From Kudoa neothunni (Eukaryota; Animalia; Cnidaria): a stretch of DNA of 64,000 nt. Below are positions 1,182 to 50,805 of the stretch, piece after piece; the first letter of the stretch is position 1; each line of letters begins with the position of its first letter. Location of the stretch: contig OZ199838.1 in the NCBI GenBank assembly GCA_964304625.1, positions 16,145,731 through 16,209,730 of the forward strand. The letters are read 5' to 3'. Below the pieces are notes generated by a model. The model worked only from the letters and a program-made list of their open reading frames with translations, ran no database searches and was not told the origin of the DNA. The position numbers and the translations under genes are program-made.

Positions 1182-2164
1182 AATTAGTTTATTCGCTATG
1201 ACTGCGTTCACTCGACTTTCTGTTTGCGTGTTTTTAATATATTTAGTTTGAGTTAAACTACACTTGTAAATATACTAATTTTAAGTTGAGAGGTTTTAAT
1301 AGATTTTAATGTTAATTAAGTTATTTAGCTTAATGCTTTTTCAAACATTAATTCCTGTTATATAATAAAATTCTCGAATTCATTTAGTAAGATAATTTAA
1401 TAAATTAAACTTATATTGATATAATATAAAATTTCAAATTTTATTATTTAAAATCTTTTGTAATCTGTCCATTAAGGCGGACAAGTGGAATTTATTTACG
1501 TTAGCAAATTGGCGCAGATGAAAGAATTTTCAAATAATACTTTCTGCACTTATTTTACATAACATATGTGATATGGACACGTCAGATAGACAAAGTTTTG
1601 TCCATATTTTAGTTATTTTCTTTAAAACCTCCTGGAGTTGGAATTTCTACAAATTTTTACCTGGATCTCAAATCATTTCTACATAGGCACTGATTTGATC
1701 AAAAAATGATTAGAATAGTGTTCTCCAATCTTTTTTAATTCTAAAAAATTTTTCTTCTGAGGATGTCAGATGACCCACTTAAATAATGAAAATATTTGAT
1801 AGAATTAAAAACTAATAATTTACAGTTTATTATATTATATTTATATCCAATATTATATATAATGAAAATCTAATAATGGAAATGATTCGTTTTTCTTCCG
1901 ATTATAAATATAGTTAATACTCAAATATTCGATATATTTTTTATATACATAAAACAGAAAATATAGTATTTGAAATACCTTGGTTTTAATATTTAATTAA
2001 AATAATAAAATTTTTGTATGTAATAAGTAATATTTAACAAACAATTTTTTAGATTGGCATATAATTAATAATTTCCTCATCAAATTATCCTATTATATAT
2101 GAATTTCTATTGATTATTAAAGTTGAATAGGTTTAATAAAATGAATCTTTTTACGAAACAATAT

Positions 2165-2227
2165 AATAATCAGCTTAATTATTAGTTTTTATTGTTTACT
2201 TAACAACGATGTTCTATAATCAACAAA
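2165..2227 (+). promoter_or_regulatory. Conserved proximal upstream motifs of family 1 genes
   Basis: aatcagcttaattattagtttt and gttctataatca are conserved immediately before the ATG in A, B (~21983-22034) and C (~43818-43873), although the surrounding B sequence has diverged. Confidence 0.4.
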
Positions 2228-5200
2228 ATGAGACAGAGATATTTTGCTATATTATGTCTTTTTGTTTTGACAGGTAATCCCTCCAAATAAATACTATTCT
2301 TATTTTTTTAGTTTTTCACTCTCAGTATGGCTTCAAAAATGATATTGATAATAATATAATGGAATTAAAGTTTTCAAACGATGATAACAAATATCATATT
2401 TCGCTCTCTGGGTATAATATCGAAAATAGCCACAGAAAATGTGCTCTCCAATATTATGATAACATCACTAATGAACTTAAGAAAGTTCCTTCTTGTAAAA
2501 CCGATATATCTAATGCAGTTGAAGATGAAGCAGCTCATATGTGTGCTTATGAATGCAAAAAAGTTACATTGAAATTCAGCGCGGATGAATTTAAAAAAGT
2601 CAAATATTTCAAGTGGTGCCAAGGAAAAAATGATAAGGACGCTAAGAAATGCAATGTTAATAGAGCATTTTCAGTCAGAGGTATTTTAGAAAATTATATA
2701 TAATTTAACGTTTTATTAGATATTTACTTAAAAAGTTATTTAAAAGCGACTAAAGGAATTGATGAATTCACTGTTACGGTTAAAAGCAAAAAAAATAATG
2801 CATTTACTTCAAAAATTGATGGAAAACAAGATCAGGTTCCTGCAACTGAAGGCTTTTATGATGAAAAAAATATAACATTGTACGCTAAATCACATGGTTT
2901 AAAATACGCCATAGAATTTACAAATAATTCACCAGAAATTCAGTTAAACCCCTTAAAGCCAGTAGAAGATTGGTTTATTTCAACTGGATCCGAGCATATA
3001 GTTGGTGATCAATATTATTACTCTATATCTCTTCAAAACCCATTACCTTCGAAAATGTGTTATTTTGGAATAAAACATATGGATGACTCGCTGTTTTCCT
3101 CTTCCTGCTCAGATATGAACAAAGCTGGACCATGTCTCCAGCCTTGTCACAAAGCAACATTAAAATATTGGAAAGAGTTAAAATTTGCACAAGTAATGGT
3201 TAAATCATATGACAACCCAACATCAAAAGAATTTATTCAAACTGTTACATGTAATTTACTTCTTATGTGTATATAATTTTTAACGTAAAATAAGTTAAGA
3301 ATGATCAACCAAAAGCAACGACTACGAATAACCAAGCAACTATTCCTTTAACTAATTTAAATATGAATGAAGATGACACCAATGTTAAACTGGTTCGTCA
3401 ATTAAGGAAATTAAAATAATAAAGAAATTCCTTGGAATTAATGATAATTGGAAAGACCATACATGTATTGACGGATGTACTACAAATTTTGGCTCAATAA
3501 CTATTACCTCATTGGACGACCTAACAGAATATGTTCTCAGAGTTAAAATATCTGGATTAACAACAGTGGATTCTTCTGAAGTTAATTATTATCATAGATA
3601 TTTTTATTTCCAAACAAATGGTACTAATGAATATTTAATGATAATTATATATTTATGGGTAGGAAAGGAATTTTCTGGTTCTAAGAGTATAAAGTTCGCA
3701 ACTATATCAGAAACACATACAAAATTATCTGTTACTCCGTCCCAACTTTTCACTGATGGGGCAAATGTAAATACTAATTGTCAATTATACTACTCAACGA
3801 CAGGGGCTGAGCCCTTGAAACTACCTGCCACATGTGAAATAGGCGAAAATAAAACAATTTTGTTTAGCTAAATGCACTAGCACTTTTAGTGTAGTGAATC
3901 TTGACCCAATGACCAACTATAAATTTACTATTTGTTCTGAAGGATATACGTGCTTTGAGTTCGCCGAAGAGAAAACAAGTAATGTTTATTGTTTTGTTAA
4001 ATAATAAATATTCTTCATAGCAACTGGAGTAACGCCCACAGTTACTCCTGGTAATGATATATCTGCCAAAAAAACAAAGGTTACACTAGGTCCTCAAAAT
4101 GGAATTAATGACAACGCATGGAGATATTTACTTATAGAAAAAACATCAGAAAAAACAGTTAATGATTGTTTAAATTCCGCGTGCAAACCTACAGTAACAT
4201 CTAATGTTCTAAATTTTGATTGGACTGATCTTAATCCTGATCTTACATACAGCATAGTTCTGTTTAACGAAGATTACACTAATCCGAAAATAGCTGATAT
4301 AGAAAGTATTTCTCGATTATTACAAAGTTTGAAACTTTATAGATAATCAGGTGGAAAACATTGGTCCATTAATTCTACAATACGACACATCCACTCAAAC
4401 ATATAATGTAAAATTTAATGAAAGCCCAACAACTTTAATCGATAAAGAATGCAATGTTCAAAAATTTAAGTCAGGGAAAAATATATATGAAGGTGCTGGT
4501 AAAAATATGGGAGAAATTAGAAGAAATTGCAATGAGCTTACAGGATCAACAAATATTAATATTGATATTTCTGATAAGTTGACTTATATTTCTGTCGCTT
4601 ATGAACATACGGAAGTAACGTTGGAAAAATCTTTAAAATCAGGAGTCAAGAAACTCCAAGTTTCTAAATCAATTTTGTTTCATGACGTTCAAAGTCACCC
4701 AGTAATTTCCAAAAAAAGCAAAATAGAAAGAGTTACATTAGGCAAAGAGGAATTAACAGGTATTATTCTTAAGGAACAGAGATGAAGATAATGTTGACAT
4801 AGGTAAAGAACAAAATAAACAGGTAGGAGACAAACATATAACAGCTACAATAAAGGTTGTACCAGATAATCCGCTAACGCCGGAAAAATCTAATCACGTA
4901 ACGCCACAAGTAAAAACTGAACCAGTTATATATCCCAAAGGAAAAGTCTATTCTATTTTTATAGGTAATATAATTAATGTATTGTTGTAATTTTTATTAA
5001 AGATTATTACGAGGAAATAACATTCACTGCATCACATGATGGTGGAAAAATAAAGTTAGGATTGGATAAACGTTCATTAAGCTGTGCTGTGTATAAAGAT
5101 AATGTCCAGGATTCATCTGTAATAGCAGTAGTATCAAATTCCGGCGGTTCTTGTAACTTTGAAAGTTACTCAATTCCATTTACAGAGTTGGTCGAGGACT

Positions 5201-8200
5201 ATTATATAAGCTGTCCGGAACACTTTGATTTTCATTATTATTACGATAATAGTTTCGTAAAAAACCACGCTCCTATATTTAATCGTTTTTACTATGAGTT
5301 GGCTGTTGACGAAGAAAAAAAACAGTTAAAAGTCAAATTAGTCAACAAAGAACCATCTAAAATATGCACGTTTGAATGGATAGACACGACAGCGTCATCG
5401 TCTCTCCAATATTTTTCGAGTGAATGCAAAAACAAAGAAACCTGTTATTATGGCTTGTGTAGTAATATACGTTTCGGCAATGTTGCAGCTGAAGTGAATG
5501 CAATAAAAATACGCGCCCAAAAGCTTGGAATGTCTCCTGTTATTGGTTACCAAAACAACATTTATTTATGTAATTATTATTTATGTGTAACTAAATTATA
5601 TTAGGTTTAGTAAAACATGGAAACGACATATCTGTAAAGACCTCAAATAATAAGGTAACAATTGATATTAGTAATAATAATAAGAAAGAGGATGGTGAAC
5701 AAGTCACTGGATCCACTACAGTGCAGTGTACATTAACGTATTGGAACGCGTATGCTCCTTTGGTTAGCGAAATGGATAGGATAAGCGTCTCCAGTCCAAC
5801 GTGTAATTTCCAAGAATTAGAAATATCACCGGTTGAAACTACTTTGCCAAGTGATATTATGGTTACAGTGACAAATATTCCTAATTATAATCCAAAGAAA
5901 TATTTTTACCATAAAACTAGTATGATTTTGATTACATTATAATAACAATTATTTGTTTAGCTCAAGCAAATACTCTTAGTTTAACTAGCGAATCTGTTAC
6001 TGCTACTGCAAACGGATTCACGTTCATTCCATATTCGACGGCAACAACGAACATATGTAGTATTTACATCAAAGAAACTAAAGCTTCAGAGTATTATCCT
6101 GCTACATGCTCAGGAAACGCATTATGTGTTGGTAATTGCAAAACCTCATCCACAATTGAAGGACTCTATGCTGGTACTAGCTACGATATAATGATTATAC
6201 CTAGTGGAGATTTTGATGTTAAAACCATCAAAAATAAGCAGACATGTACATATTTTAAATATTTTAAGTGATTAAATAAACTTTAGTTGGCAGTACTGTA
6301 AAATTCGAGATTTCCAGTGATTCTACTAAAAATAATCTTAAAGTGGAACCCAACGGAATTATCGACAACCCGAGTGCTACTGAGTGTTACTATCAATTAT
6401 ATAAGCACGAATCAGATACCAGTATTCATTATTATTTATTTGAAAATTTAAAAATTTTAGCTTCACCAACAACAATATTGCAATCATGTATTGGGTGTAC
6501 ATCTAGAAATGAACCTATGAAATGTAATGAAATAGAATTCGGTTCTATTTTATATAATTATAAGAATAATTACCGATTATTGATATATGCAAAAGAAAAA
6601 ACAGCACCATTTAAGCTTGACATACCAGGTTATTTGATAATGATTTACGTTTTATATACATGTGTAGCATTTTCAAGGATGGGAAAAATTCAGCAAAAAG
6701 TTATGGCAGCTGCAACCAACGACATGGAAAAATTTTCTATAACATTATCAGGGTTTACAAATAATTTTAAATGTGCCATTAAAATTTCAAATTTCGACCC
6801 TGTTCCTACCTTTGCCAAACCGACATGTTCATCTAACATTGAAGAAAACGACTGTATTATAGATTGCAGCCGGAGTGATTTCGAAATTGGACATATTAAC
6901 TCAAAAGTTGATCGTTATATTTCAATTTGTTACGGTTCGGATAAAACGAAAGCACAAAGTTGTAGATCAGTTTCTGTTTTTGCCATAAAAATGGGTATAT
7001 TTATTATTAACGTGAATTATTACTTATGATCATGTTACTAATTAATCAATTTTTTAAGATTACTTGCAAAAAAATACATACAAATTGACACATGATGTGG
7101 GGAAAATGAAATTTTTATACAAAACAACATCAAAAACAGATTGGAGTGTTACAGTAGATGGAAACGACGATACTTTTAGTAACTCAGGAAAAACCAGTTT
7201 AAATCAATTAAAAAATTCTGAAACGCCAACAGAAAAATCTGGAGTTTTTTCTATTGAAAGATTTGTGAACTTTTATAAAATTAATTCAACACTTTTGTGG
7301 CCGGGAATCATTTATTATACAAACAACACGTTTTTGAATACAACAACCCCAATAAAGTCCCAAATTATTTATTCTATTTCATCAGTTGACGGAGACAACG
7401 AGAAAATTAATATTACATTCTTTCCCGGACCTTATAATAATGAAATGTGTCATATCAAAGTTTTTGAAGTTGGTACTAGTGGTGCAGACAATGAAAATAT
7501 ATTGAATGAATGTGGAGATAGGTTGGGCGGATGCTATCAACTTTGTCAAGATGGAGTGATTAATTTAACACAGCAATATAATAAAATCGGAGTAATCGTT
7601 AAAAGACGATTTGATAAACAAGAGTTCAAAGAATACTTTAAAAGTAATTAAGAATTATTTTAAAAATTTTATTTTCTTTAGAGGGAGACACTGGATTTTC
7701 ATTGGATGGAATTTCTAGCGCGAGTGTAACGCTCAAGGGGCTGGGAGTTTATAAAACTATTAACAAAGAAAATTTGACTCCTGCCTGTACTATTTATATA
7801 ACGATGGATAATAAAGTTTCCGAAAAAAAGCAGGCTAATTGCGACACAAATCAATGCAACACTGATTGTGATCCGTCGTACACCATTACTGATTTAAATC
7901 CCGGAACAAGTTATATAATTTCAGTTAAAATTACAAATTTGGGATTTACTGGGGATTATATAAGGAAAATGAAATTTAGAACATGTAAATACAGAAAATG
8001 TTATAATTTTTTAAATTTATTTTAGCGGATGGAACAGCGTTACCTGCATCTGAAAAAGAAATTAAAATGAAGTCAGGCGTGGCTTTATTAACACCATTTA
8101 GTGATGACGCTTCCTTGCCAATTTGTAGAATATATATAAAGAAAGAAGGTCTACCACATCCAAAATATATGGCCACGTGTGATGAAATAGGAATTTGCGA

Positions 8201-8643
8201 ACATAGATGTAGCAGTGAATTCAAGATAAATAATCTTGAGATAGGAAAAACCTATGAAGTATTTGTTGATCCTACCGATGGTAATCAGCAATCAATTTAT
8301 AAAATCAAAAGAGGTATTTTTAAAAAATGATTTATTTAACTAAATTTTTTGTAGAAAATGTTGAAACAACCATTACATATAGTTTTAACCATGGGAGCGA
8401 CTTAAAGATTACTGTTAATTTTAATGAAAACAGAGATAGTTCTGTGTGTCCCTTTATGCTTCACGAGAAAACTGAAGCGGATGGGAAGAGACCAACAATT
8501 GTTTGGTGTAATGATGATGAAGATTGTTCGGCTAACAAGTGTGTTATCGATATCAATGGTTATCAAAGGAGAATAATTACATCTTGAATGTGAAAGTGAA
8601 AGACATTTCATTATATAAAAAACATGATATTCCATGTAATTAG
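2228..8643 (+). pseudogene. Family 1 copy A: large secreted Cys-rich FN3-like multi-module protein, frameshifted
   Basis: Signal peptide MRQRYFAILCLFVLT and the same exon structure as copies B and C. Frame-breaking indels relative to B/C lie at ~3385, ~3853, ~4780 and ~8558. Sequencing error cannot be excluded. Confidence 0.7.
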
Positions 8644-11143
8644 TTTTATTATTTTTATGTTATAAAATAATAATATTTTAATGATACCAATAAAAGATGC
8701 AAGAATTATAAAAGCATTAAGGTGATAAAAATTCTGTGTATTTTTTAATAAATGTTTTCTAGTAAATTCATATATTATATAAATTTTGTCAAAATTCATA
8801 TTAGAAGAGGAAAATTTAAGGAGTGAATATTCGAATATTGATATAAACGATATAGTTCAGAAAGTGATAAAAAAGATTGAAGAAGGGTACATAATTTTAT
8901 TTTATTATATTTTCTAATATTTGATTAGTAATTAGTACTTCGGTGATAACTTTGACGTTAAACAATAATTAGAGAGTAAAGATCAGCATGAACATGCCAT
9001 AGCAGAAAGTCGAAACTCGTAAATTCTTTTTTACCTACAAATCTTAACTCTTTTATAGATCACTAAATAGCTACATGTAAATATTGCGTGTGACGATTTA
9101 ATAATATTTTTTAGTTTATATGCCATGATACCGATTGTGACAGTACTGTTGGTTGTGATAGGTATCGGTATTCGAAAGAAATTATCCATAGATACAACTT
9201 ATGATTTGTAACAGATATATTCGAGATTATTTCATTATTTTCAGATTAATTTTATATATATATATATATATTATTCATAGAATATTTTTTGTAGTAACAA
9301 AATCAAAAATCTACCTAAGAAATTACAACATTAATTAAATTTGTTAGTTATTATGTACATGATTAATATTCTTATTTATAAATAGTTACAAATGCATATA
9401 TATTCTAAAAATTTAAACAGCCTCATTTATTAAAAAATTAATATAGAAACCCAATTACATAATATCTCATATAATTAGCATGAGCGACAGTTTTTGGGGT
9501 TCATGTTGAATTATTATATAAAATTATTCAACTAATCATTTAAAGTTACAAATGAATCATTAATTCAAATTAAGAATAATATTTTTTTTAAGTATTCATA
9601 AAGCTAAAAATTATTGTTCGGAATGCAATGATGAAAATTTTTAGCACCCTTTTTTACGTAAGCGCACACAACAACTATTATTTTTTGTGCGTAGAAGATG
9701 TGATAGAAGAATCATATATTAATATCAAAATTCATCGAGGAAATGTTACGTTTATTTAAAAAGATCATTTCAATACCAAAAATCAGCTATAATATGTGAT
9801 TCTATAGGTCAGTTACAGGTCTGAGTAAACTTCTTTGATTTCGTTGCTACAACTCAAGTATAGATGAGATAAATATTAATTTTCTTATTTAAATACGACT
9901 TTAGAAATAATAGAGATAATCATAAAAAGTAACTTGAAGACCCAATAGCCATATTCTTAAATTTATCTATGTATTAATACATATACTTAAAAAATTATCG
10001 GTTAAACCTATTGTTTCAAAACCTCACTATTATTGATTTATATTAAATATCTTCTATTTTATCCATTATTTATAATTATTTTTTTTCTTAATCTCGTCTA
10101 ATTCCCAGTTTTTTCGTTGCGACAGTATTACAATTATTTAAATGTTACGTTTATTGAATAAAATAATTGATTTATTGATGAGGGTAAATATTTGGTAATA
10201 GTACAAAAGTTGTAAAATTCTAATATAATACACTTCTTAAGTATTAAAATATATCTAAGATAGTACGTAATTTACAAAGAATCGAAATATTTTAATACGA
10301 ACAATTATGATTTCCAATGTTTGCCTTATGGATATGCTTATTTCTCCACAATTATTATTTCGCAGTATAAACTAAAGAACTAATAAACAGCAACGTATAA
10401 TGCCAAACTATAATAAAATTTAATGTTTGAATATATATATAGAATATTTCTCTCTTTGGAAAATAGGAATAATCGATTAAATTCTTATGTATGTGTATCA
10501 AAAAATATTAAATTATTTTGTGTGAATTCCGCCTTTCAAAAATTTTACTTATGCTTGGGTATTATTTCAATATTTATCTATTTTTATTGATCTTTATAAA
10601 TTTTACTTGAATGATATATGAGGCCAACGTAAAATTTGAAGATCATTTTTGGGGAAATTTAAAAAATCATTATTCTCACAATCTAGAGCCTAACTGTTGC
10701 AGTGGACGGCGAAAATATATTTATCATCGTAATGGACTTAAGTTGGACACATTAATCTGGTTATGGTTCATTTTCCGTCGATAAGATGCAGAATTAAAAT
10801 TTATTGTACTTATCAATTAAATGTCACTTGTTTAACAAACATTATCATCAGCGATAAACCTCTACAACAGACAATGCACAAAAGTTAATGGAAAATTGGT
10901 TCGTTCGTGTTTTGCGCCAAGAGTGGAACATGACTTTTTATCCGTGTATATACGAAGGTGCATTACGTGATTTGTACTGTAGAATCAAATATCCTCAAAA
11001 ATCATTATATATAAAATGATGGTAAGACACAAAAAGTTTAAATATAAAGTCAAACAATAATTCAAATAACCGATAAACATAATGCTAACTAATTTTAGAA
11101 TTAATAATAATAACTAATCTAAAAGATGGAGTCATAGTATTAA

Positions 11144-13121
11144 TTAACGTTTTTTGTAGCATATTATTATAATAATGAAAACAAATATTATCACGATGGG
11201 TACGACGATTGCTATCACCAAAAATTTTTTCGATTTGGTAGACGAATTTTTTGGGTTGGATTCGGTGGAATTTGTAATATTTGGAGTAGTTGGAGTCTCA
11301 TTTTGGTCTCCTTAGATTGAGTAATAAAATAGTATATATATAATGAAAAAACCTTCAATAAATTTAATATATGTTCGATTATTGGCATAATTTTGTACCC
11401 ATGATGGTAATCTGTTCTAATATTATAATTTATAAATTATACGATATGATAATTATAAAGATACCTCGATTCGAAAAAGGTAATCGATATCTTTTTTCAG
11501 TCCTTGCTCATAAATATATGCAATAAGAGAGTACACATATATCTTCGTCACTATATCCTAAATCTATTGAACATGTATTAGTCCATATTTTATATACTTC
11601 CACATCGTAGGTGTTTGAAGTGATTTTTTTCTTTTATAGACGTGTTTATGTTGGAAAGGTCAGAGAATGAATACAGAGCTAACGTTGGATCATCAATATA
11701 AAACTAAATACACATAATAAATGTATTTTATTTTGATATAAATAAAATAATATCTATGCCTTAAAATAGTTACTTCCCGTTTTTATAGAAAAATCAATTT
11801 TTTTAAACTCAATAGTTTGATCATTCCAAGGGTGAGTTTCATCGAGAATCAACGTTACACTTTCAATAAATTCTAAGCAAGCCTCATAGTTGTAGGAAGC
11901 TACGAATTTTATTTGTCCCAAAAATTTGTTATAATCTTCCAATGTAGATATTAAATTAATATATTCTTCTGTTGATATGGAAATCGTTTCATCCTTGATA
12001 GAACAAGGGAATTTTAAAATAATTGATCCATCTCCCTGATCAACTTCAAATTTATTTTGCTATGAAATGAATTAATTGAAAATTAAATGAATGGATTAAA
12101 TTACAGTTATAAATTTGTAAATCAATCTAGGCAGAATATACTTGTAGCCGTTGGATTTCATATATTTACACAATAAAGAATGTGACGTTGAATTGGCAGA
12201 GAAAACTACAATATCATTATTATCACCATCGTGGTTGTGTATTTCTGTTGGATATCCAATCATTAACAAATCTGCATCCAATGATATATATCCAGCGTCG
12301 TTATATTGCTAATTTTTCAATACAATTATTGATATATTTTTATTTCATTTTAAAATTTAATTCCAAAAATGTTAGTTATAAAAAAACATAATTTCGATTG
12401 ATATTTGTTAAAATTATCAATTACCGTCGTCACATAGAATTTTCTATCACCCTAAACAAAGAATAAAAAACCATTTTATATTTTTATTATGTGGATACTT
12501 CTCTTCTGTATATATTGACAATATTTGAATCCACATAATTAAGAATAATTTTATCATTAGTCGATAATTTGGAATAGGATATTTGTAGAAGTTTATTATC
12601 GAGAGTAACGTTGCGAACGTTGGTACCAAAATCCACCCAATTTAGATAATGCATATTTTTCATTCTATAAAATAATATTAATTTTTCTTTTAGCATTAAT
12701 AGAATATTACGATGATGCAAAATTTTCATCAGAAATCACAACAGTTACGCTAGAGTTTTTGATCCGAACACGTTTTTTTAATATTCCCAAACATTCGTCC
12801 TCAATAACAGTCGCGTTATAAGTGACATTATTTGAATCTTAATTGACTTTTAAATAATTAATGAATAAATATTTAATTACTAGGACAAGGAAATGTTACT
12901 GATTGATCACATTTGACTCCAAAAAACATAAAATGTTCATGTTCACAAACAAATGCTTTAATATTTATTTCTCCATCATCAACATAAATCAATATCTCCT
13001 ATATATGTAATATATTATATTAATAAATTATATTTGTTGTTGCTTTTTTATATTCATCTTCTGAAGCGGATATTACAATATATAAAGTAAATAAAACCAA
13101 CTTCAAGAACCAATATACCAT
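11144..13121 (-). pseudogene. Family 2 copy 1: type I membrane protein, probably disrupted
   Basis: Signal peptide MVYWFLKLVLFTLYIVISA, a Cys-containing ectodomain, S/T/N/P stalk, TM segment FLVIAIVVPIVIIFVFIIIIIC and tail YKKR*. Compared with copy 2 it has a +1 A-run frameshift (~11625) and two GT->GC donors (13043, 11759). Confidence 0.7.
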
Positions 13122-15196
13122 TTTACTAAACAATATTAAATATTACTATAAATCAAATCAAATCAAATATGCGCACGACTATAAATCATGATTAGAAATT
13201 TTTTATTAATTGTATAAAAAAAATACTTAAAATATTTATTTTACGATTCAAATAAATGATTCTTTTTTAGAAATAAATTCGTTTCTTATTTAAAATTAGC
13301 GATTAAAAGTTACACCAGAATAATTCCAACCAAATCTAACCTAAATAATAATCTATAATATTACTTAACAAAAATTTAATATAATCTTGTATAATCAATA
13401 ATTTAATTAAAATCTGTAAGATATTTTATTTTATAGGAAATCGTAAGAAAAATTTTTAATATCTAATACAACATTGTACAGCCTTCCTCCAGATATCCAT
13501 TAGTTATATTTATAAAAACAATAATTAAAGCATATATTTTATTATAATATTTATTGTTAATCATTATTTGGAGTTGTTATTAATTATTTTATCTATTAAA
13601 ATATGCTAATTTATTAGGTATGTTTTAATTAATTTTCTCAAAATATATTATTAAGGAATTTATTTAGTTTTACTTATTATAAGTTAATTCATTGGATACC
13701 TATATATAAATCTGTCATTAAAATCGCTATTTAAGAATCTAATTCCAATTTTGGTAAAATTATTAAAAAATGTGAAGAAAAAAGTATGATGATACTATAA
13801 ATAATTAATAGATGTCTTATATGATGATAAACATAACTTAAATCTAAAAATTATGATAAATAATTTGGTTTGCAACATAAATAAAGTAATTTTTTTCATT
13901 TGTGTATTATTCCTGTGAGTTTTTGGTTTAGCCCAATTAGTGTCTCTCCCATATGTCTGTCTGATTTAAAAATTCGTTATTAAAGTTTAGAGGTGTCACC
14001 CATGAAAATTTCCTTGGGGATTTAAACCATATTCTTATTATCAAATCCTATTATTAATAATTAAAAAATTTCAATAGGTAAATAGATTTCGTCTATCCAA
14101 AAATATCGTTGGCATTGGGAGGCAAAATTTTGCTTCAAGGGTCAGGTAGCTCTAAAGTAAATTCAGGAAAGAATTAACGTTTGAAAACGTAAATAGCACA
14201 ACAATTAAAATATGTGTTTAATTTAGATATTCTGAATAAACTGACCTTATGGTATTCCAAATTATTGGTATTTAACATGAGTTCACAAAACGTTCGTGTG
14301 GCGAGGGAATGTGTCTATATATTAGAGATGGTATAAAAGTTAGTTTTTAATTTAAATATTTCAGTCTAATTAAAATTGTTCTATAAATAGAAGGAAGAGT
14401 TTTCCTATTCCAAACTTTTCTTTACACCAAACATTCCTACCAATTGTTTGCTAAAGTTTCTGTTGGGATGTTTTTACCTTTAAATGAATTATTTTATGTT
14501 AATATAACAATGCTTATTAATTTATATTGATTAAATTTGGAGAAAACTTATGAGTCATTATCGTATTAATCTCATTAAATCATTCACAGAAGTTCCCAAA
14601 AATTTACGTGTTCCCTCGGAAATTTAGGAAATACATCCGGAAATAATTAACTCAAAAAATCGTTATTTTAATAATATTTAACACTTTTCGTACGAATGTA
14701 AATTGATTTAAACATGGATAAAAATTCCTCATCAATTTGTCCATGGGTGCTGTATGTAAAGTAAAAAAAAGTAATTAGTTCATAATAAATTACAGCGGCC
14801 ACTTAAATTAACGATGCAAAAAAAATATTATCTGTTAGTTTAAATTAATACATTTAAATTTTTCAGAAATGTTGACTCTTTCTAAAGTTATCCACAGCGT
14901 CATTATATTACTATAATATTAATATATGGTCGTATTATATTTGTAGGTATACATTCTTCCGCAAGCTCGTAAATTTATTTTTGTTAATAATTAAAAAAAT
15001 GTTTAACAATTATAACGCATATAAATCTTAACTTTAACTAACATTATATAATTTTTAATAGGCGAAATAAATAAAATTTATTTTTTCCACAGAAAGGTTT
15101 TTTCACATGTCATACTAAAATGTCTAAAAAATTAAATTACAGGTTATTTTTAGGAAAAATATAATTATGATTTATTTTTGTCGAGATTTTATTTAA

Positions 15197-18456: not shown

Positions 18457-18834
18457 GATCTTAGATATGAAATTAATATCAAAATTTAAGCGAAGAAAAA
18501 CATGAGACATTGAATATAAACAATTAAGATATTTACCTTGATTTATTGGAATTTTTGAGGTATGTTACCCCATATCATAATATCAATATTTTATTACAAA
18601 ATAAAAATTAGATATCAGTGTTTTTTTCAAAGGTAATTAAATTGACTTACGAAACAGAGCCTCGTTATATTAAGTTACGCTATAGTCAAATCTGTCTAAA
18701 CATTTTTTAGAATGACAAAAATACTTTCAAAGTCTAATAATTAGAAGTGAATTTTTAAGTGGCTGAGTTAGGTTTGTTCAATTTGCTTTTGAGATAATGC
18801 AAAATAACACATAATAAAGAAGAGTGAATTAAAT

Positions 18835-37981: not shown

Positions 37982-39392
37982 CCCTCTAACGGGCTCGGGG
38001 TCTTATACTCCAAAACGATTTTAATTGGTCCATAGAATATTTAATAATTAACTGGGGTACATATAATTTCGTCAATTCTCCTAGGTTATTTAAATAAATA
38101 GACTTATAAAAATATTTATGTGTAATATTGATTATTTCTTATCAAACGAAATTTTTATCCTCAAACGGGCTTTGAGGTAAAAAAGACCCCGGAATTCTTT
38201 GATATAATGTATGTAGAAAATTGTTATAAGATAATTTGGTAATTCAACAAAAAATATGCCTAATAAATACTGAGAAATTCAGCAATTATTAATCGAGATA
38301 AACCGCAATAATTTGATTGGGCATGTTTATTGCAATGTGTTGGAAACAATCGCTTTAATGAGTATTGTAAGGTCAAAGTTTATTAGTTGAAAACAAATAG
38401 AATTCACATATTACCCGTGTATGCTAGCAATAAATAACCCCCTACAATGTAAGCTACAGATAATTTAAGTCTTGGGGTCGTATGAAGAGTTAACGCGAAA
38501 TATACACCAATTTTATCATTTGCTGCGCTCATTGAGATAATCATGGCACCGTCCGAGGATTTTAGCGATGAATATCAACGTTTAAGTAGAGACATTGATG
38601 AAACCGTTCTCGAATATTCCGAAGAATCCGATGATACACATAAACTAAAGTCTGAAACAATAGTGAATTACAATGATTCCAAAGGTGGAGTAGATACCGT
38701 GGATCAGATGTTAGCTTCCGTTTCGGTCCGTAGATTTAATCAACGATGGCCCATGGTGGTTTTTTACAATATATTGGATTTGAATTTGATAAATATTTTG
38801 CCTGTATAAACATATATTTAACGATCTCATGAAATTGAGATGTGATTTTCTGAAAAAAATGGTTGGAGAGTTGTATAAACTTCTTTTTTAAAAAATTCCC
38901 AAATGAAAAAATGTTTAAAAAGATCTCATTCAATTTCTATGGAAACATACAACTTTGCAGATTCAAATACTTCTAAACGTAGATGTGAATATCTTTCTTG
39001 TGAAAACGATAAGAAAACAATATCCAAATGATCAAAATGTAGAAGTTTTTATTGTCGCCCCCATTCGTCAAATAAATGTCTAAATTGCTAGCTATTAAAA
39101 TCCAAATTTTTTTGGGACCCTTGGAAATATTTTATCTTTTGTTTTTTACTATAATATCATTTTTCATTATTTCAAATAAGACTAAACATATTAAACGTTA
39201 TAACAACGATTTATCGCGATATCTGCTTAATCTTTCCGAAGAGGATTATTGAAGATTAATTATGTAGTAATTGATTGTTTTCTCAACGTTACTTAGGCAG
39301 AATTTTCCCACATTTTCCACATAAGTTTATAATAATTTTCTACATACATTAAATCAAAAAAATCTGGGGTCTTTTTTACCCCCAATTTGGGG
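37982..39392 (+). mobile_element. piggyBac family P1 relic with a different internal deletion
   Basis: TTAA|CCCTCTAACGGG left end, homologous to the 15197 element. ORF 38543 fuses MAPSEDFSDEY to YNDSKGGVDTVDQM..RWPMVVFYNILD (third catalytic D region). Ends in GGG|TTAA at 39392. Confidence 0.85.
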
Positions 39393-39759: not shown

Positions 39760-41460
39760 TCATAAATAAAAAAAATTGTCTCAAGTTTCAAATCACTCAG
39801 TTTTGTTCTCAAGGTGGAAATAACACGGTTGCATAGGGAAAAACATCTTTCTGAGTCAATACTTGTAGGCCTTATATTAGCGAGAGTTTTACGAACCTTC
39901 TCTAAACGATCTTACATCACACCGTGATTCATAAAATTGATAATTTCAATGGAATCCGAACAATATTTTGACTTTTTCGGTCTGGTCGCGTAATTAATCA
40001 AATCGTCTAAACCCATTTCAGCTTTCGAAGGTTCATGGTTGTGGATTTGATCATTCGGTTCAATGAAATTAATTGCTTCTTGTAACTCAAAATTTGAAGG
40101 TCTTCTGTAGAATAAACTCTTTTTACAAATGTTTGAATCGAAGCTCAAAAACATAAATATGTCAGACCAAATGGTGCGTCGTTCAAAGCAGCGTTCGATA
40201 AATTTCATTTTTAAATTTTCTGAAATTGTTCCGTCAATAAGAGAGAGATCCTTAACTGTATTAGTTAGTATAAAATCACATTGTTCAAGATTTATTTGTG
40301 ACTCTGAAAGTTTGAGAACGGCGCGATGCACAATTTCCAGACATGATGTTAATTCCTTAAAATTCAGTCATTTTTACAATATCTTTATCGATAATTACAT
40401 TGACCAAAATCATGTAAGCGTCTTCAATGGCCTCGAACATCTTCACAAATTTGCCTAACATATCGTAACAACTTGACCATCGTGTCACACAATCGATATT
40501 CATTGATAGGTATTTAATGCCTTTTCTTTCACATGATTTTCTCAAGGCGTCCGAAGCCAATCCAGATCTTGAAAAGTTACTGACAACTGACCTCACCCGA
40601 GATAAAATATCTAAGAAACTTGGCACAAGGACAAATTCTTGCTCATCAAACTCCAGCTCGTCAGTTATAGTTTCGAAATTTTTTGGATTCTGGCTATTAG
40701 CTTCTTCATACATTGTGTCTTTTACAGCTATACGTTAATGTAGGTTTGTCAATTAATAATTCAATTACCTAAATTTATTCCATGTAGCATGCACTTTATC
40801 TGCTGAAAAACCTAACTCAAAAGTGCATTTTGCCATGTTTGACGCTCCATCGGTACACATAAATAAGGACGTAAAGCCAAATTTCGATAACTGGTTTTTG
40901 ATTAAGAACGCCAATTCTACACCTGTAGATCCTTCGGTGACTCTAATAACCCCGAGTTAAATTTTTTTGTCTTCGAAATATGCTGGGATATTAAGAAATC
41001 GTTTTTTAGACCTTGACGTCCACTCATCAGAACAGAGCGCAGGTCTTGAATTGGCACTGGAAAATTTTTTTTATCTTGCTCACCATAGATGCTTCTACTT
41101 TTACGCAAGAATCGAAAATTTCATCATAGGATACTGGGATTTCTTTATTGTGAACTTTTTTCAACAATCGTCTTATGGTGGTACTTTTTGCAATTTTGGC
41201 AATATCACTATCCAGGATAAAATCCCAAAGACATTTTCTCGCAAAACTTTCAATAACGGGTTTTATTTGTATGTTTCTAAATTTCAATAGAAAAATATCA
41301 GCGATTGCAACAACTTATTTTTCGAATCAATCCCATGTAATTTAGCGTGTGCATGCAATGTACTAGTCGAACTTTTTTTGCACATAAGTACTGTATCAAA
41401 TTTTTTACCCCTTTAATATTTTAAAAACTAGTTTATTTTTTTAAAATGCTGCATCAGTTA
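39760..41460 (-). pseudogene. hAT transposase (family H2), fragmented; subterminal cggtt repeats at 39393-39460
   Basis: Motifs ALCSDEWTS, MCTDGASNMA, DCVTRWSSCYDML and RPTSIDSERCFS, plus a BED remnant SSTSTLHAHAKLH. Clearly distinct from H1. Confidence 0.85.
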
Positions 41461-41471
41461 CATTTTTACAT

Positions 41472-42912
41472 ATTTTTAGTAATATTAAAGTATTCGGCAC
41501 CTAAAAAACGTCCTCTTGTGCATGTTTTTCACGATTCTTGATAATAAGATGAAAGAATACGGAGATAAAAAATTCAGCTCAAAATAATGACTTTAAAATT
41601 ATAAGAATTTTTCATCCAAACGCAGTCGGATACACGTGTAACCTCCATCTTCTTTCAGCAAACATTGAATTGTTCTCTAACTCGTTTTGAAAATCATTCA
41701 TAAATTGGTTTCATTTCGTATTTTTTATCGTATAAAAGAAAATTTTTACGATGTTAAATTTATCTATACATGTTTTTATTAGTTTTTAAATATGAATGGT
41801 TTTAAACAAGAAATTAACCACATGCTCTCAAAATGCATTTTCTTATAACTTGTGTTTCCTTTCGTGCTTACTCAGACTTAGAATAAACACACACGCGGCT
41901 TGTTCAGGTCTGACAATAAAACAATATAGAGCTTACTTAACAAGGTGATGAAGCAGCCGTTAATTTATATAATAGTTATAATCTCCAATAGAACTGATAA
42001 TTTTTTTTTAAATAAATCAACACTATATTAAAGATAAGCATTTAATTTTAAAAGGTAAATATCATGAGGTCGATTATATGATGTTATTACTTTATTAGAG
42101 GATATTTTACGTGTGTGTTTATTCTAACATTCAACAAACGTAAACATGTTGTTATTATACCTTCAAAGAATTTATATTTCTATAAATATATCAGTTTTAG
42201 TCAATTATACGTGTACTGACATTAATAACTTTAGTTATTATATATATTTTTATATCTCGTAATATTCTCAATTCGCATTTTTTGGAGAATTATTTGTTAC
42301 CAAACTTTGACATATAAAAAAACTTAAAAAGAAATAAAAATATCGCTAAGTAATTTTTTTCCAATATTATACAAACACTGCAGGGTAAAACAAATTAATA
42401 TCATCATTTTTTAAAATTAAGTTTCTGAATTTTAATAATAAAAATTGAATAAATTCTTAATTTCTCGAAAAAAATTAAATCTAAAAAATTATAAACTAAA
42501 ATAAATCTTACTACATTAACATCGATATTTGAAAGTTCATAAAGTATTTTTATCTTAGCGAAAAATGAGATGTTTTTGTGAAATTTGAAAATAGTTTATT
42601 TTCCAAATTAGTTTATAAAATTGTTAGATATCAAAGGAAAAAAATCTAAATAGTAATAATAAATAACTTTTGAGTTAATAACTAAGATGGAAACATAAAA
42701 ATTTAATGTTAGATGAAAAAAAAGATGGAGATTAAACGTGTAGCCGACCATATTCGGATAATTCTCAAAATTTTGAAGTTATTATTTTCAGCTAAATTTT
42801 TGCATTTCATATTCTTTTATTTTATTATCAAGAATCGCGAAAAAAGAAATGCGAAAGAATATGTATAAGGGGATGTTTTTTAGGTTCCGCATACTTTACT
42901 ATTACTAAAAAT
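41472..42912. mobile_element. Same long-TIR MITE, copy 2, inverted, nested in hAT H2
   Basis: TIRs tttttagtaat..aaagtattcggcacctaaaaaacg / taggttccgcatactttactattactaaaaa. The interior is the reverse complement of 17400-18270. Confidence 0.8.
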
Positions 42913-43192: not shown

Positions 43193-43224
43193 TAACTAAT
43201 ACAATATATGCAAATTTTATAATG

Positions 43225-46200
43225 GTGGGTTTATATATTAACTATTTTTAGAAATTTAGTTTTTTAGGCCAAATAGTGACACTGAAGAAGGTTAAAATTA
43301 CTAATATTTGTAAACTTGTCGCCTCCATAATCAATGCAATGAATGCATAATAATTTATATTTATAATTTCTCATTATATAAAATTAAAAAAATTACGGCA
43401 TGTTTTCTTGTAAATTCAATAAATTTAAATATAACAGTAATACCAGATTTTTTCAAATATAACTTACCATTATCCAATATTAATATTTTTCAATATTTCT
43501 GATATAATAAATAATTTATCCTGATGATGGTTTATTTTCCTTTTAATTACTTAAAAGGTTTGTATTAAAATATTTAGTGTATTCTTTTATATAGATAAAA
43601 ACGAAAAATTAATATTTTGAAATATTTTTTATTATCGTAATATTTACTTAAAGTAATAAAAATATTACGTGACAAGTGATATATAAATAACACAATTTTT
43701 CAGATTAGCATATAATTAATAATTTCCCCAACAGATTATCCTATTATATATGAATAGCTATTGATTATTAAAGTTGAATAAGTTTAATAAAATGAATCTT
43801 TTTACGAAACAATATAATAATCAGCTTAATTATTAGTTTTTATTGTTTACATAACAACGAAGTTCTATAATCAAAAAAATGAGACAGAGATATTTTGCTA
43901 TATTATGCCTTTTTGTTTTCACAGGTAATCCCTCCAAATAAATATTATTCTTATTTTTTTAGTTTTTCACTCTCAGTATGGCTTCAAAAATGATATCGAT
44001 AATAATATAATGAAATTAAAGTTTTCAAGCGATGATAAGAAATATCATGTTTCACTTTCAGGTTATAATATCGAAAATAGCCACAGAAGATGTGTTCTTC
44101 AATATTATGATAATGCCGAACAAAGACTTAAAAACATTCCTTCGTGTAATATTCATATACCTAGCGCACCTGAGAATGATGCAGCTCAAATGTGTGCTTA
44201 TGAATGCATTAAAGTTACATTGAAATTCAGCGCGGATGAATTTAAAAAAGTCAAATATTTTAAGTGGTGCCAAGGAAAAAATGACGAGGACGCTAAACGT
44301 TGTCATGTTAAAAGATCTTTTTCAGTCAGAGGTATTTTAGAAAATTATATATAATTTAACGTTTTATTAGATATTTACTTAAAAAGTTATTTAAAAGCGA
44401 CTAAAGGAATTGATGAATTCACTGTTACGGTTAAAAGCAAAAAAAATAATGCATTTACTTCAAAAATTGATGGAAAACAAGAAGATCAGGTTCTAGCAAC
44501 TGAAGGCTTTTATGATGAAAAAAATATAACATTGTACGCTAAATCACATGGTTTAAAATACGCCATAGAATTTACAAATAATTCACCAGAAATTCAGTTA
44601 AACCCCTTAAAGCCAGTAGAAGATTGGTTTATTTCAACTGGATTCAAGCATAATGATGAGGACCAATATTATTATTCTATAATTCTTCGAAACCCATTAC
44701 CTTCGAAAATGTGTTATTTTGGAATAAAACATATGGATGACTCGCTGTTTTCCTCTTCCTGCTCTGATATGAACAAAGCTGGACCATGTCTCCAACCTTG
44801 TCACAAAGCAACATTAATATACCAGAAAAAATTGAAATTTGCACAAGTAATGGTTAAATCATATGACAACCCAACATCAAAAGAATTTATTCAAACTGTT
44901 ACATGTAACTATTGTAAATTTTAATGCACTTTTTAACACAAAGTTAGTTAAGAATGCCCAACCTGAGGCAACGACTACGAATAATCAAGCAACTATTCCT
45001 TTAACTAATTTAAATATGAATGAAGATGACACCACTGGTCCAACCGCTTCGGCAATTATCGAAATTAAAATAATAAAGAAATTTCTTGGAATTAGCTCTA
45101 CTTGGAAAGTCGTTACATGTACTGACGAATGTACTACAAATTCTTGCCCAATAACTATTACCTCATTGGACGATCTAACAGAATACGTTCTCAGAGTTAA
45201 AATATCTGGATTAACAACGTTGGATTCTTCTGAAGTTAATTATTATCATAGATATTTTTATTTCAAAACAAAAGGTACTAATGTATGTTTACTGTTGCTT
45301 TTATATTCACGAGTAGGAAAGGAATTTCCAAGATCAAAGAGTATTACCTTCGCTACAGTAGCAAATGAACACACAAAATTATCTGTTACCACATCGAATC
45401 TTTTCATTGATGGGACTAATACGAATACTAAATGTCTGTTATATTACTCAACGATATGGACTGATCCTTTGAAACTTCCTGCCACCTGTGAACAGGGTGG
45501 CAAAAAACAATTTTGTTCAGACAAGTGCACTAGCACTTTCATTGTAGTAAACCTTGACCCAAAGACCAACTATAAATTTACTGTTTGCTCTGAAGGTTAC
45601 ACATGCTTTGAGAATACCACTGAGAGGGATAGTATAATTTATAATTTTGTTAAATAATAAATATTTTTTCATAGCAACTGGTGTAACGTCCACAGTTACA
45701 TCTGAATACGAGAGCTCAACCAAAACAACAAAAATTACTATAAGTGGTCAGAGCGGAACTGTTGAGAGAGAGTGGAGATATTTACTAATAGAAAAAATTT
45801 CTAAAATAACAGTTATTGATTGCTTGAATTCTGAGTGCAAACTAAAATTATCATCTGACGCTATAAGTTTTGAAGGGGATGTTATCAATCCTTACCTTGT
45901 GTACAACCTAGTTCTATTTAAAAAAGATTATTTTGAGTCGATGATATTTGAAATACCAAGTATTTCTCGATTATTATAAAGCTTGATGTTTTATAGGTAG
46001 GCGTTGGGACGTGGAAATCACCGGCCCCAAAATTATACGATACGATAAATCAACTCAAAAATATAAAATAATATTTACTGAGATTCTAGAAAGTGGAAAC
46101 GGTAAAGAATGTATGGTAAAAAAATTTAATTCGGAGAAAAATAAATACGAAGATGCTGGTGAATATGGTGAACCAATAAAAAAAACATGTGATCAACTGT

Positions 46201-49200
46201 CAAGCAAAGAAAATATTAATATTGACATTTCACATAATTTGAATTATATTTCTGTTACATACGAACATACTGAAGAATCGAAGGAAGGAACTTTAACATC
46301 AATAATCCAGAATCTCCAAGTTTCTAGGTCAATTTTATTTCGAGACGTTAAGAGTCTCCCAGTAATTTCTAAAATGAGAAAAATTAAAAAAAGGTCAGTA
46401 GAAGAAAAATTAGATCTGAAAAAGGATGCACAAAGTAATCCGCCGGCATCAGAAAAACCTAAGAAGGAAGAGCATCCAAAAACACCTATACTAATTAAAT
46501 TTCCCAAAGGACGAGTATATTCAATTTTTATAGGTAAAATATAATTAATTCATTATTATAATTATTATTTAAGATTATTACGAGGAGATAACATACACTG
46601 CATCACATGATGGTGGAAAAATAAAATTAGGTTCGAATAGATGTTCATTAAACTGCGGCGCCTATAAAGATAATGTCCATGATTCATCTGTAGAAGAAGC
46701 AAAATCAAGTTCCGACGGTAACTGCAACTTCAAAAGCTACTCAATAACATTTACAGAATTGGTCGAGGACTATTATATAAGCTGTCCTGAACATTTTGAT
46801 TTTCATTACTATTACGATAATAGTTTCGTAAAAAACCACGCTCCTATATTTAATCGTTTTTACTATGAATTGGCTGTTGAGGAAGACAAGAAACAATTCG
46901 AAATAAAATTAGTCAACAAAGAACCATCTGAAATATGCACTTTTGAATGGATAGACACGACAAGCTCATCATCTCTCCAATATTTTTCGAGTGATTGTAA
47001 AAACAAAGATAACTGCTATTATGGCTTGTGTAGTGATATGCGGTTTGAAAATGTTGTAGATACAGTAAAGGCAGTAAAAATACGTGTTCTCAAACTAGGA
47101 ATGTTTCCTGTTATTGGCTACCAAAACAACGTTTATTTATGTAATTATTTTTATTTAAAAATTAAATTATTTTAAACATAGTAAAACATGGAAACGACTT
47201 ATCTGTCATCACCTCAGATAGTAATGTAAAAATTGATATTAGTAATAATAAGAAGATGGAGGATGGTCGACAAGTTACTGGTTCTAACCCCGTGGAGTGT
47301 ACGTTAATGAATTGGAATACGTATGCACCATTAGTTAACGAAAAGGATAGAATAAATATCTCTACTCCAAATTGTATCTTTGGAGAATTAAAAATATCGC
47401 CAGTTCCAAAAACTTTGTCAAATGATATTATGGTCATAGTAACAAATATTCCTAACTATACACCGAGGAAATATTATTACCATAAAATTAGTATGATTTT
47501 GATTATATTGTAATAGTTATTTATTCATTATTTAGCTCAAGTAAATGATCTAATTCCCGGAACTGTTACTGTCACTGCAAACGGATTCATGCTCACTCCA
47601 CATTCGCAAGAAACAACGAGCATATGCAATATCTACATTAAAGAAAAAAAGGCAACAGAGTATTATCCCGCTACATGTTCACAAAACACATTATGTGTTG
47701 GTAATTGCAAAACCTCATTCACAATTGAGGGACTCTATGCTGGTACTAGCTACGATATAAAGATTATACCTAGTGGAGATTATAATGTTAAAACCATCGC
47801 AAATCAGCAGACATGTACATATATTAAGTATTTTAAATGATTGGATTAATTTTAGCTGGTAACATTGTAAAATTCGAGATTTCCAGTGATTCTACTAAAA
47901 ATAATCTTAAAGTTATATCGACAGGAAGTATTATCCCAAGCGATACTGACTGTTACTATCAACTTTATAAGCATGAATCAGATACTAGTAATTAATACTT
48001 TTTAATTCATGATTAAAACAATTTAGCTTCCCCAACAACAATATCAAAGTCATGTGTTGGATGTATATCGGGAGACGAACTTAAGAAATGTAATGATATG
48101 CAGTTTGATTCCACAGTGTATAATCATAACAATAATTACCGCTTATTGATATATGCAAAAGAAAAAATAGCACCATTTAAACTTGACATACCAGGTTATT
48201 TGACGTAGATATACGTTTTGTATATTTATGTAGCATTTTCAAGAATGGGAATGATTAAACAAAAATTTATGGCAGCTACTGGCGATGACATGGAAAAATT
48301 ATCTGTAACATTATCGGGGTTTACAAATAATTTTAAATGTTCCATAAAAATTTCAAATTTCGAGCCTGTTCCCACATTTGCCAAGCCGACATGTTCATCT
48401 AATATTGTCGAAAACGACTGTATTATAGATTGCAGCCGGAGTGATTTCGAAATTGGACATATTAACTCAAAAGTTGATCGTTACATTTTGATTTGTTATG
48501 GGTCAAACAATGATAAAGCAAAAATATGCAGGTCACCTTCTGTTTATGCCATAAAAATGGGTATATTCATTATTAACGTGCATTATTATTTATGATCATT
48601 TTACAAATTAATCAATTTTTTAAGATTACTCGCAAAAAAATACGTACAAACTGGCATATGAGGAGGGGGGAATGAAATTTTCATACAAAACAACATCAAA
48701 AACAGATTGGATTGTTACAGTAGATGGCAGAGAAGATACTTTTAGTAACACAGAAAAAGAAATGTTGAATCATTCAAATTATTTGGACGCCCCAGTGGAA
48801 AAATCTGGCGTTTTTTCGATTGATAGATATATGAACTTTTATACAATTAATTCCACACTTTTGTGGCCGGGAATCATTTATTATACAAACAACACGTTTT
48901 TGAATACAACAACCCCAATAATGTCCCAAATTATTTATTCTATTTCAGCAGTTGATGGAGACAACAAGAAAATTAATATTACATTCTCTCCCGGACCTCA
49001 CAATAATGAAATGTGTTATATCAAAGCTTTTGAAGTTGGTACTAGTGGTGATGACAATGAAAAGATATTAAATGAATGTGGAGTTGGGTTGGGCGGTTGT
49101 TATCAACTTTGTCAAGATGGAGTGATTAATTTAACACAGCAATATAATAAAATCGGAGTAATCGTTAAAAGACGATTTGATAAACAAGAGTTCAAAGAAT

Positions 49201-50805
49201 ACTTTAAAAGTAATTAAGAATTATTTTAAAAATTTTATTTTCTTTAGAGGGAGACACTGGATTTTCATTGGATGGAATTTCTAGCGCGAGTGTAACGCTC
49301 AAGGGGCTGGGAGTTTATAAAACTATTAACAAAGAAAATTTGACTCCTGCCTGTACTATTTATATAACGATGGATAATAAAGTTTCCGAAAAAAAGCAGG
49401 CTAATTGCGACACAAATCAATGCAACACTGATTGTGATCCGTCGTACACCATTACTGATTTAAATCCCGGAACAAGTTATATAATTTCAGTTAAAATTAC
49501 AAATTTGGGATTTACTGGGGATTATATAAGGAAAATGAAATTTAGAACATGTAAATACAGAAAATGTTATAATTTTTTCGATATAATTTAGTGGATGGAA
49601 CAACGTTATCTGCATCTGGAAAAGAAATTAAAATGAAGTCAGGCGTGGCTTTATTAACACCATTCAGTGATGATCCTTCCTTGCCAATTTGTAGAATATA
49701 TATAAAGAAAGAAGGTCTACCACATCCAAAATATATGGCCACGTGTGATGAAATAGGAATTTGCGAACATAGATGTAGCAGTGAATTCAAGATAAATAAT
49801 CTTGAGATAGGAAAAACCTATAAAGTAATTGTTGAACCTACCGACGGTAATCAGCAATCAATTTATAAAATCAAAAGAGGTATTTTTAAAAAATGATTTA
49901 TTTAACTAAATTTTTTGTAGAAAATGTTGAAACAACCATTACATATAGTTTTAACCATGGGAGCGACTTAAAGATTACTGTTAATTTTAATGAAAACAGA
50001 GATAGTTCTGTGTGCCCCTTTATGCTTCACGAGAAAACTGAAGCGGATGGGAAGAGACCAACAATTGTTTGGTGTAATGATGATGAAGATTGTTCGGCTA
50101 ACAAGTGTGTTATCGATATCAATGGGTTATCAAAGGAGAATAATTACATCTTGAATGTGAAAGTGAAAGACATTTCATTATATAAAAAACATGATATTCC
50201 ATGTAATTAGTTTTATTATTTTTATGTTATAAAATAATAATATTTTAATGATACCAATAAAAGATGCAAGAATTATAAAAGCATTAAGGTGATAAAATTC
50301 TGTGTACTTTTTAATAAATGTTTTCTAGTAAATTCATATATTATATAAATTTTGTCAAAATTCATATTAGAAGAGGAAAATTTAAGGAGTGAATATTCGA
50401 ATATTGATATAAACGATATAGTTCAGAAAGTGATAAAAAAGATTGAAGAAGGGTACATAATTTTATTTTATTATATTTTCTAATATTTGATTAGTAATTA
50501 GTATTTTTGTGATAACTTTGGCGTTATAAAATAATTAGAGAGTAAAGATCTGCATGAGCATACCATAGCAGAAAGTCGAAACTCGTAAATTCTTTTTTAT
50601 CTACACATTTTAACTCGTTCATAGATCACTGAATAGCTACATGTAAATATTTATACGACGATTTAATAATATTTTTTAGTTTATATGCTATGATACCGAT
50701 TGGGACAGTATTATTAGTTGTGATAGGTATCGGTATAAGAAAGAAATTATCCATAGATACAACTTATGATTTGTAACAGATATATTCGAGATTATTTCAT
50801 TATTC
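43225..50805 (+). repeat. Tandem segmental duplication unit 3 (family 1 gene only)
   Basis: Homology to units 1 and 2 ends at ~50805 (after gattatttcattatt); no minus-strand family 2 copy follows. Confidence 0.85.
43879..50210 (+). CDS. Family 1 copy C, apparently intact; 3' end uncertain
   Basis: ATG at 43879 gives MRQRYFAILCLFVFT. Exons are collinear with B, and the frame is open at the four positions where A is broken. Confidence 0.85.

Follow-up and report, generated by a model that had tools for sequence, protein, structure and literature searches.

How do three neighbouring copies of one gene come to resemble each other in alternating patches, such that the nearest relative of any copy depends on the part of the gene that is compared? 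The question is raised by a stretch of DNA from Kudoa neothunni, a member of the Myxozoa (parasitic cnidarians). This stretch of 64,000 nucleotides (nt), referred to here as the window, lies at 16.15 Mb on a 17.15-Mb chromosome, has a G+C content of 28%, and contains three direct units of about 7 kb on the forward strand, termed copies A, B and C. The unit starts are about 19.8 and 21.8 kb apart, and comparison of the window with itself gives 84–90% identity overall between units. Each unit is a copy of a gene for a predicted membrane-anchored protein built from modules resembling fibronectin type III (FN3) domains. A first-pass annotation of the window held that the closest pair among the three copies switches along the gene, that a single duplication tree is impossible, and that the pattern is the signature of recombinational diversification. 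By examining identity profiles, segment trees, silent sites and tract borders, we conclude that the first two statements are sound and that the third is not supported: A, B and C are very probably old tandem duplicates overlaid by interlocus gene conversion, as judged from sequence comparison. The three copies are as follows:

2228–9211, forward strand: copy A, a pseudogene of an FN3-like type I membrane-protein gene, with its ATG shared with B and C and its stop codon at 9209–9211.
22040–28997, forward strand: copy B, intact; exon 1 encodes a signal peptide, exons 2–17 are open, and the protein ends in a transmembrane helix and short tail supplied by the last exon.
43879–50776, forward strand: copy C, intact relative to B; all exon insertions and deletions are multiples of three, with no in-frame stops.

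The ATG is conserved (A 2228, B 22040, C 43879) and opens a 46-nt signal-peptide exon. In copy B it is followed by 16 more exons that are open over 5671 nt, the final one encoding a hydrophobic helix with a 12-residue tail that ends at 28997. Introns are uniform and short (36–64 nt), with ends GTAAT or GTATT...TAG. The reading frame of copy A is broken by single-nucleotide deletions at 3383 and 8557 and a single-nucleotide insertion at 3850, and meets an in-frame stop at 3386, which makes this copy a pseudogene.

Nearest relatives that switch along the gene

In a three-way alignment of A, B and C scanned in 200-nt windows, the closest pair switches along the gene. The alignment contains 1284 informative sites, of which 494 join A with B, 409 join B with C and 381 join A with C. 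These sites fall into 549 runs, where 2000 shuffles give 851±17; at its longest, a run favouring the same pair extends over 77 sites, compared with at most 14 in the shuffles. Exact identity is similarly clustered: the longest identical stretch is 879 nt between A and B (A 2378–3256 = B 22192–23070), 478 nt between A and C (A 7535–8012) and 247 nt between B and C (B 26473–26719), while with differences spread at random the longest identical run averages about 50 nt and reaches about 100.

Four-state segmentation of the same alignment calls about 16 pair-specific tracts of 36–940 bp (six AB, four AC and six BC). Together with a block of about 1 kb that is 98–99% identical in all three copies, they cover about 60% of the gene, against a background of 69–84% identity. 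Most of the tracts are small patches inside the gene, bounded at either end by divergent DNA, their identities are graded (92, 96, 97, 98, 99.8 and 100%), and each copy is its own unique mosaic. The G+C contents of tracts and background overlap with no clear difference by eye, a comparison made without a statistical test. The main tracts, the core between them and the three-way block are these (identities as fractions, with tree support from the segment trees described below):

A 2057–2377 and C 43708–44028, forward strand: A–C tract running from upstream sequence through exon 1 and intron 1 into the start of exon 2; AC 0.956, AB 0.789, BC 0.814; tree AC 100%.
A 2378–3314 and B 22192–23128, forward strand: A–B tract, with the 879 exact nt (2378–3256) running across intron 2 and 99.8% identity up to 3314; C at 0.895; tree AB 100%.
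B 23196–23473 and C 45035–45312, forward strand: B–C tract that includes intron 4; BC 0.971 against 0.888 and 0.860; tree BC 99%.
A 4089–4392 and B 23902–24205, forward strand: A–B tract that includes intron 6; AB 0.924 against 0.70 and 0.72; tree AB 99%.
A 4393–6418, B 24206–26202 and C 46053–47984, forward strand: divergent core, pairs at 0.69–0.84, the same as to the paralogues D, E and F (introduced below), with four tracts of 73–97 bp inside.
B 26204–26717 and C 47986–48499, forward strand: B–C tract spanning two introns; BC 0.979 against 0.85 and 0.84, with the 247-nt exact run at 26473–26719; tree BC 100%.
A 7535–8012 and C 49101–49578, forward strand: A–C tract, 478 nt exact; B is distinct at 27405–27637 (0.841); tree AC 99%.
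A 7851–8881, B 27638–28668 and C 49417–50447, forward strand: three-way block at 98–99% that takes in the final FN3 modules with their introns; its identity to D, E and F is about 80%.
B 28725–28958 and C 50504–50737, forward strand: B–C tract that takes in the transmembrane exon and the short exons at the end of the gene; BC 0.991, A at 0.89–0.90; tree BC 100%.

All six of the pairwise tracts named in the first-pass annotation are recovered in this list: the A–C resemblance of upstream sequence and leader, an A–B identity put at about 880 bp (in fact exactly 879 nt), the B–C resemblance that takes in intron 4 (0.97, against 0.77 and 0.74 for the other pairs), the next A–B and B–C tracts, and the A–C tract in which B stands apart. 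The annotation had also described the last exons and downstream flank as near-identical in all three copies. For the last exons this is borne out (A 7851–8881, 98–99%); for the flank it applies to B and C only (0.99), with A at 0.89–0.90.

Maximum-likelihood trees were built for 15 segments, using as outgroups the three full-length paralogues found elsewhere in the genome (D and E on chromosome 3, F on chromosome 2), which are 76–78% identical to B. The favoured grouping runs along the gene in the order AC (100), AB (100), BC (99), AB (98, 99) ... BC (100), AC (99), BC (100), so that the switching topologies have bootstrap support of 98–100% at the main tracts. Within the core, some segments do not even recover A, B and C as a monophyletic group. 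The conclusion that no single duplication tree fits the three copies is thus supported.

The pattern is not confined to this locus. A second tandem triple, from a related subfamily and located on chromosome 3 (C3:9014300-9068600), has 733 runs of informative sites against 1317±20, and shows pair-specific tracts of 100% identity together with three-way identical blocks. It resembles A, B and C in its tandem layout and in the kind of mosaic, and differs from them in locus, in subfamily and in its 3' end, where identity is about 68%.

Weight of the assembly

Since the patches are read from an assembly, they could in principle have been made by it. The assembly amounts to 40.26 Mb and consists of three chromosomes (17.15, 12.04 and 11.05 Mb) and one contig of 18,219 bp; according to its published description (PMC12239612) it was recovered from yellowfin-tuna HiFi data, with 40.2 Mb, an N50 of 12.0 Mb and three chromosomes, and the 18,219-bp contig is mitochondrial. 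In this contig we found no Rfam match and few open reading frames under table 11.

The identical tracts, or the linkage among them, might be products of a low-coverage meta-assembly, through consensus bleed or chimeric paths across repeats, and several observations count against gene conversion on this score. HiFi k-mers cover the parasite at only about 7x, less than the depth that is recommended, and assembly was done with hifiasm-meta (PMC12239612). The sequence of the array, examined over B 22001–28000, is represented only by short k-mer contigs of one sample (run X1), which is probably the assembly's own source; three other runs labelled with that species, evidently the host fish (two Illumina DNA runs and one of RNA), contain none of B 22001–28000. 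Two of the X1 contigs, moreover, combine paralogue variants in a manner unlike assembled B: one (window 22482–22902) is C-like at 22641–22655 and A/B-like at 22804–22849, and the other (window 27220–27541) is B-like at 27257–27321 and A/C-like at 27405–27510. Most simply, these contigs reflect paths in the graph that switch through shared stretches of at least 31 nt; they could also be alternative alleles. The linkage within each copy rests on the assembly. Independently of the assembly, sequence comparison yields neither the direction of transfer nor the donors.

Even so, an artefact of assembly is unlikely to account for the mosaic. Collapse of repeats would give identities that are all or none, but those of the tracts are graded from 92 to 100%. 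By our reasoning whole reads from different copies should not overlap, as the copies are about 12% different and are separated by distinct spacers (78–86% identity, with differing transposon content). HiFi reads are typically much longer than 879 nt, and the longest identical run is thus far below the read length. The depth of X1 rises from about 9–10 in bins unique to B to about 21 in the tract that A and B share, in agreement with the presence of two identical copies there, although contig depths are flat means and hence weak evidence. The assembly has a consensus quality value of 48.5 (PMC12239612), and the same pattern is seen in the second array on chromosome 3.

One X1 contig matches B as far as 22902 and continues into sequence found at C3:10355618-10355647. 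The surrounding locus, C3:10354118-10357147, has no similarity to the gene, and the end of the contig at 22902 is probably a graph chimera.

Kind of recombination and age of the copies

If the mosaic is real, the form of exchange that produced it has to be considered. Unequal crossing-over alone, in which misaligned exchanges with gain and loss of copies leave hybrid genes, has several points in its favour: the copies are in tandem and in direct orientation, 20–22 kb apart; the array itself must stem from duplication; and crossovers could have generated the long blocks at the two ends of the gene, that is, at its 5' end and in its 3' 1.4 kb. As the sole process it is nevertheless very unlikely, because the majority of the tracts are internal patches of 36–514 bp that would each require two crossovers, and because A and C, which are not adjacent, share four tracts while B, lying between them, stays distinct.

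The first-pass annotation had left a choice between segmental gene conversion and module shuffling. The former fits the data, while the latter finds no support in the positions of the tract borders. Exon or module shuffling was rejected since borders are no closer to introns than random positions are: the median distance from border to intron is 54 nt against 73 nt at random (P 0.21), and of 20 borders, six come within 20 nt of an intron where 4.9 are expected (P 0.36). A search of the whole 40-Mb assembly for an external donor, either of the divergent cores or of the patch that is peculiar to B (27405–27637), returned nothing above 71–86% identity. With no better match elsewhere in the assembly, the exchanges appear to be local to the array.

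Silent sites and introns tell the two parts of the gene apart. Inside the tracts, synonymous divergence (pS) is 0–0.1 per site and introns are 0.97–1.00 identical, in the converted pair only; introns are 0.65–0.85 identical outside the tracts and 0.66–0.89 identical in the core. Identical introns and silent sites indicate recombination at the level of DNA and not constraint on the protein. In the core (A 3600–6400), the mutual identity of A, B and C is 0.74–0.83, no closer than to D, E and F, and pS among them is 0.3–0.5, equal to the value between B and D. The data fit old duplicates that would have been overwritten in patches. A recent triplication, followed without recombination by fast, selection-driven divergence of the core while the ends were merely constrained, is extremely unlikely: similar ends around a variable middle do superficially resemble constraint, and some 30-codon windows have a ratio of nonsynonymous to synonymous divergence (dN/dS) of 1.1–1.7, but silent and intron divergence in the core as high as that to unlinked paralogues on other chromosomes in effect excludes it, dN/dS is low overall, with no exon above 1 among A, B and C (values below), and constraint gives neither neighbours that switch with 98–100% support nor identical introns.

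Whole-exon dN/dS among A, B and C is 0.2–0.75, except in two near-identical exon pairs with a handful of changes, and the median over 30-codon windows of the intact copies is 0.36. Of the 186 windows, 17 have values above 0.9, and most of these fall where modules join or in a charged linker that aligns poorly. Diversifying selection was considered and is not established by these windows, which were compared without a formal test.

Gene conversion between old duplicates would account for these observations as follows. A, B and C would descend, as old tandem duplicates, from one member of a large family of FN3-module membrane-anchored proteins, with a ground-state divergence of about 20–30%, as large as that to paralogues on other chromosomes. 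Non-reciprocal homologous recombination would repeatedly have copied patches of 36–940 bp between the copies, in all three pairings (AB, AC and BC) and at different times, given that tract identity spans 92% to 100%. Copying would have been most concentrated at the 5' end and across the final 1.4 kb, where all three copies are now 98–99% identical; it would have been blind to coding, with tracts passing through introns and upstream sequence and borders falling anywhere; and pseudogene A would have taken part in the exchange, as the holder of identical tracts shared with the other copies. We infer that the mechanism is conversion rather than multiple crossovers, and that it has acted in the germ line over evolutionary time.

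This bears on the diversification proposed in the first-pass annotation, a term that the evidence does not sustain. What conversion is seen to do here is to lower the divergence between paralogues, and its visible effect is patchy homogenisation of old genes whose core pS is 0.3–0.5; neither new functional variants nor variants arising within an infection are in evidence, and diversification by this route is hypothetical.

The gene family, its neighbourhood and known systems

Six-frame comparison with the genome gives at least 68 matches to the module encoded by exon 15, and 26 modules of this type share four invariant cysteines, which are no general feature of FN3 domains. An AlphaFold2 model of the exon-15 module, made from the 26-module alignment, is a beta-sandwich (predicted local distance difference test score, pLDDT, 85.5), and its best Foldseek matches in the PDB are FN3 monobodies, an sDscam FNIII domain and tenascin, with template-modelling (TM) scores of 0.60–0.75 and a probability of 1.00. 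The repeated module is accordingly modelled as a seven-strand fold of FN3 topology. The Pfam fn3 profile matches 16 of the 26 family modules at E≤0.01 (best 6.7e-6); one module of copy B scores 21 bits against a cutoff of 25, and the best module may reach the cutoff. The protein that contains these modules presumably lies on the surface of the parasite.

Homology searches were made with exons one at a time. Exon 14 of copy B matches a 209-residue fragment at 59% identity on scaffold_5067 (1987 nt) of European Nucleotide Archive assembly ERZ28624939, which presumably comes from another Kudoa-like parasite. The other matches outside the genome, for one exon searched against 1.84 billion representatives, are one fragment at 29% identity and one weak match to a PKD-repeat protein, the latter on a contig that also has weak terminase-like hits. 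From the sparse outside matches of this one exon, the family appears to be essentially lineage-restricted and undescribed.

Around and between the copies lie the following features:

2–1178, forward strand: COX15/CtaA haem A synthase gene (Pfam E 1e-34), directly upstream of copy A and forming the left border of the array.
10157–14219 and 33475–37539, reverse strand: second gene of the repeat unit, of a family with the motif EFPC...HPWN; further copies at 58509–58808 and 63582–63932.
30165–31872, reverse strand: piggyBac-type transposase (Pfam DDE_Tnp_1_7, E 1e-48), lying in the spacer that follows copy B; the spacer that follows copy A has no counterpart at the same place.
Near 15685–16110, 38486–38806 and 59625–59915: degraded transposase-like pieces in other spacers, judged by eye.
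17244–18459 against 41470–42854, and 17273–17403 against 18268–18399: inverted matches of 78–93% between and within spacers.
18838–20720 and 39915–41314, reverse strand: open reading frames with no Pfam match.

The two close copies of the second gene (10157–14219 and 33475–37539) are 95% identical overall, ranging from 0.83 to 1.00 in 200-nt windows, and may likewise bear conversion patches; as there are only two of them, a three-way test is not available. The inverted spacer matches may be transposon ends belonging to the nearby minus-strand open reading frames.

Among myxozoans, candidate variant surface proteins have been described in Sphaerospora molnari in a 2026 preprint, which reports antigenic variation in myxozoans as proceeding by unknown mechanisms; gene conversion and fibronectin go unmentioned in that work (bioRxiv 10.64898/2026.02.11.705288). 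The description of the K. neothunni assembly does not discuss this family, its tandem arrays or interlocus conversion (PMC12239612), and the searchable literature has no mention of the family and links myxozoans neither to FN3 proteins nor to conversion in gene families. The S. molnari candidates and the FN3-module proteins are alike in being expanded, lineage-restricted families of myxozoan membrane proteins; they differ in that the former are VSP-, RIFIN/STEVOR- and ETRAMP-like.

As a mechanism, gene conversion is ordinary here and well known in gene families, and the array is a new example of a known process in an undescribed family of parasite genes. Ectopic gene conversion would, on this evidence, shape what is, in a myxozoan parasite of fish, the largest lineage-specific family of membrane proteins. 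For work on the family this means that trees and orthology calls need to be built segment by segment, that whole-gene identity cannot date its pseudogenes, and that the contrast of a variable core with homogenised ends marks the modules that are free to diverge. The array is also a concrete candidate locus for asking whether antigenic variation in myxozoans uses recombination.

The textbook case of concerted evolution by interlocus gene conversion in tandem families is that of the primate gamma-globin genes. The Kudoa array is like such cases in its direct tandem paralogues, its short non-reciprocal patches, its identical introns and flanks, its incongruent segment trees and the involvement of a pseudogene. 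Unlike them, it belongs to the Myxozoa and to a family not previously described, its conversion is partial, and its genes keep a core of about 2 kb that is as diverged as unlinked paralogues are.

A second group for comparison comprises the systems in which antigenic variation proceeds by segmental conversion from silent or pseudogene donors, as in the VSG mosaics of Trypanosoma, ves1 of Babesia bovis, msp2 of Anaplasma and vlsE of Borrelia. That the Kudoa arrays are a working variation system of this kind, with silent or broken copies like A serving as donor cassettes and new surface mosaics made within the host, is improbable; if it were so, the Myxozoa would gain a VSG/ves1-like mechanism for an antigenic variation that has been observed in them but not explained, and the deviating mosaics of the X1 contigs would be real alternative alleles. 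The likeness lies in a parasite's possession of many related proteins predicted to be on the surface, in mosaic genes, and in a pseudogene that shares tracts with intact copies. The array differs from these systems in carrying no sign of an expression site, of one-way transfer or of mosaics formed within an infection, and in that its tracts homogenise the constant 3' part of the gene, the introns and the upstream DNA as well, as ordinary germ-line conversion would.

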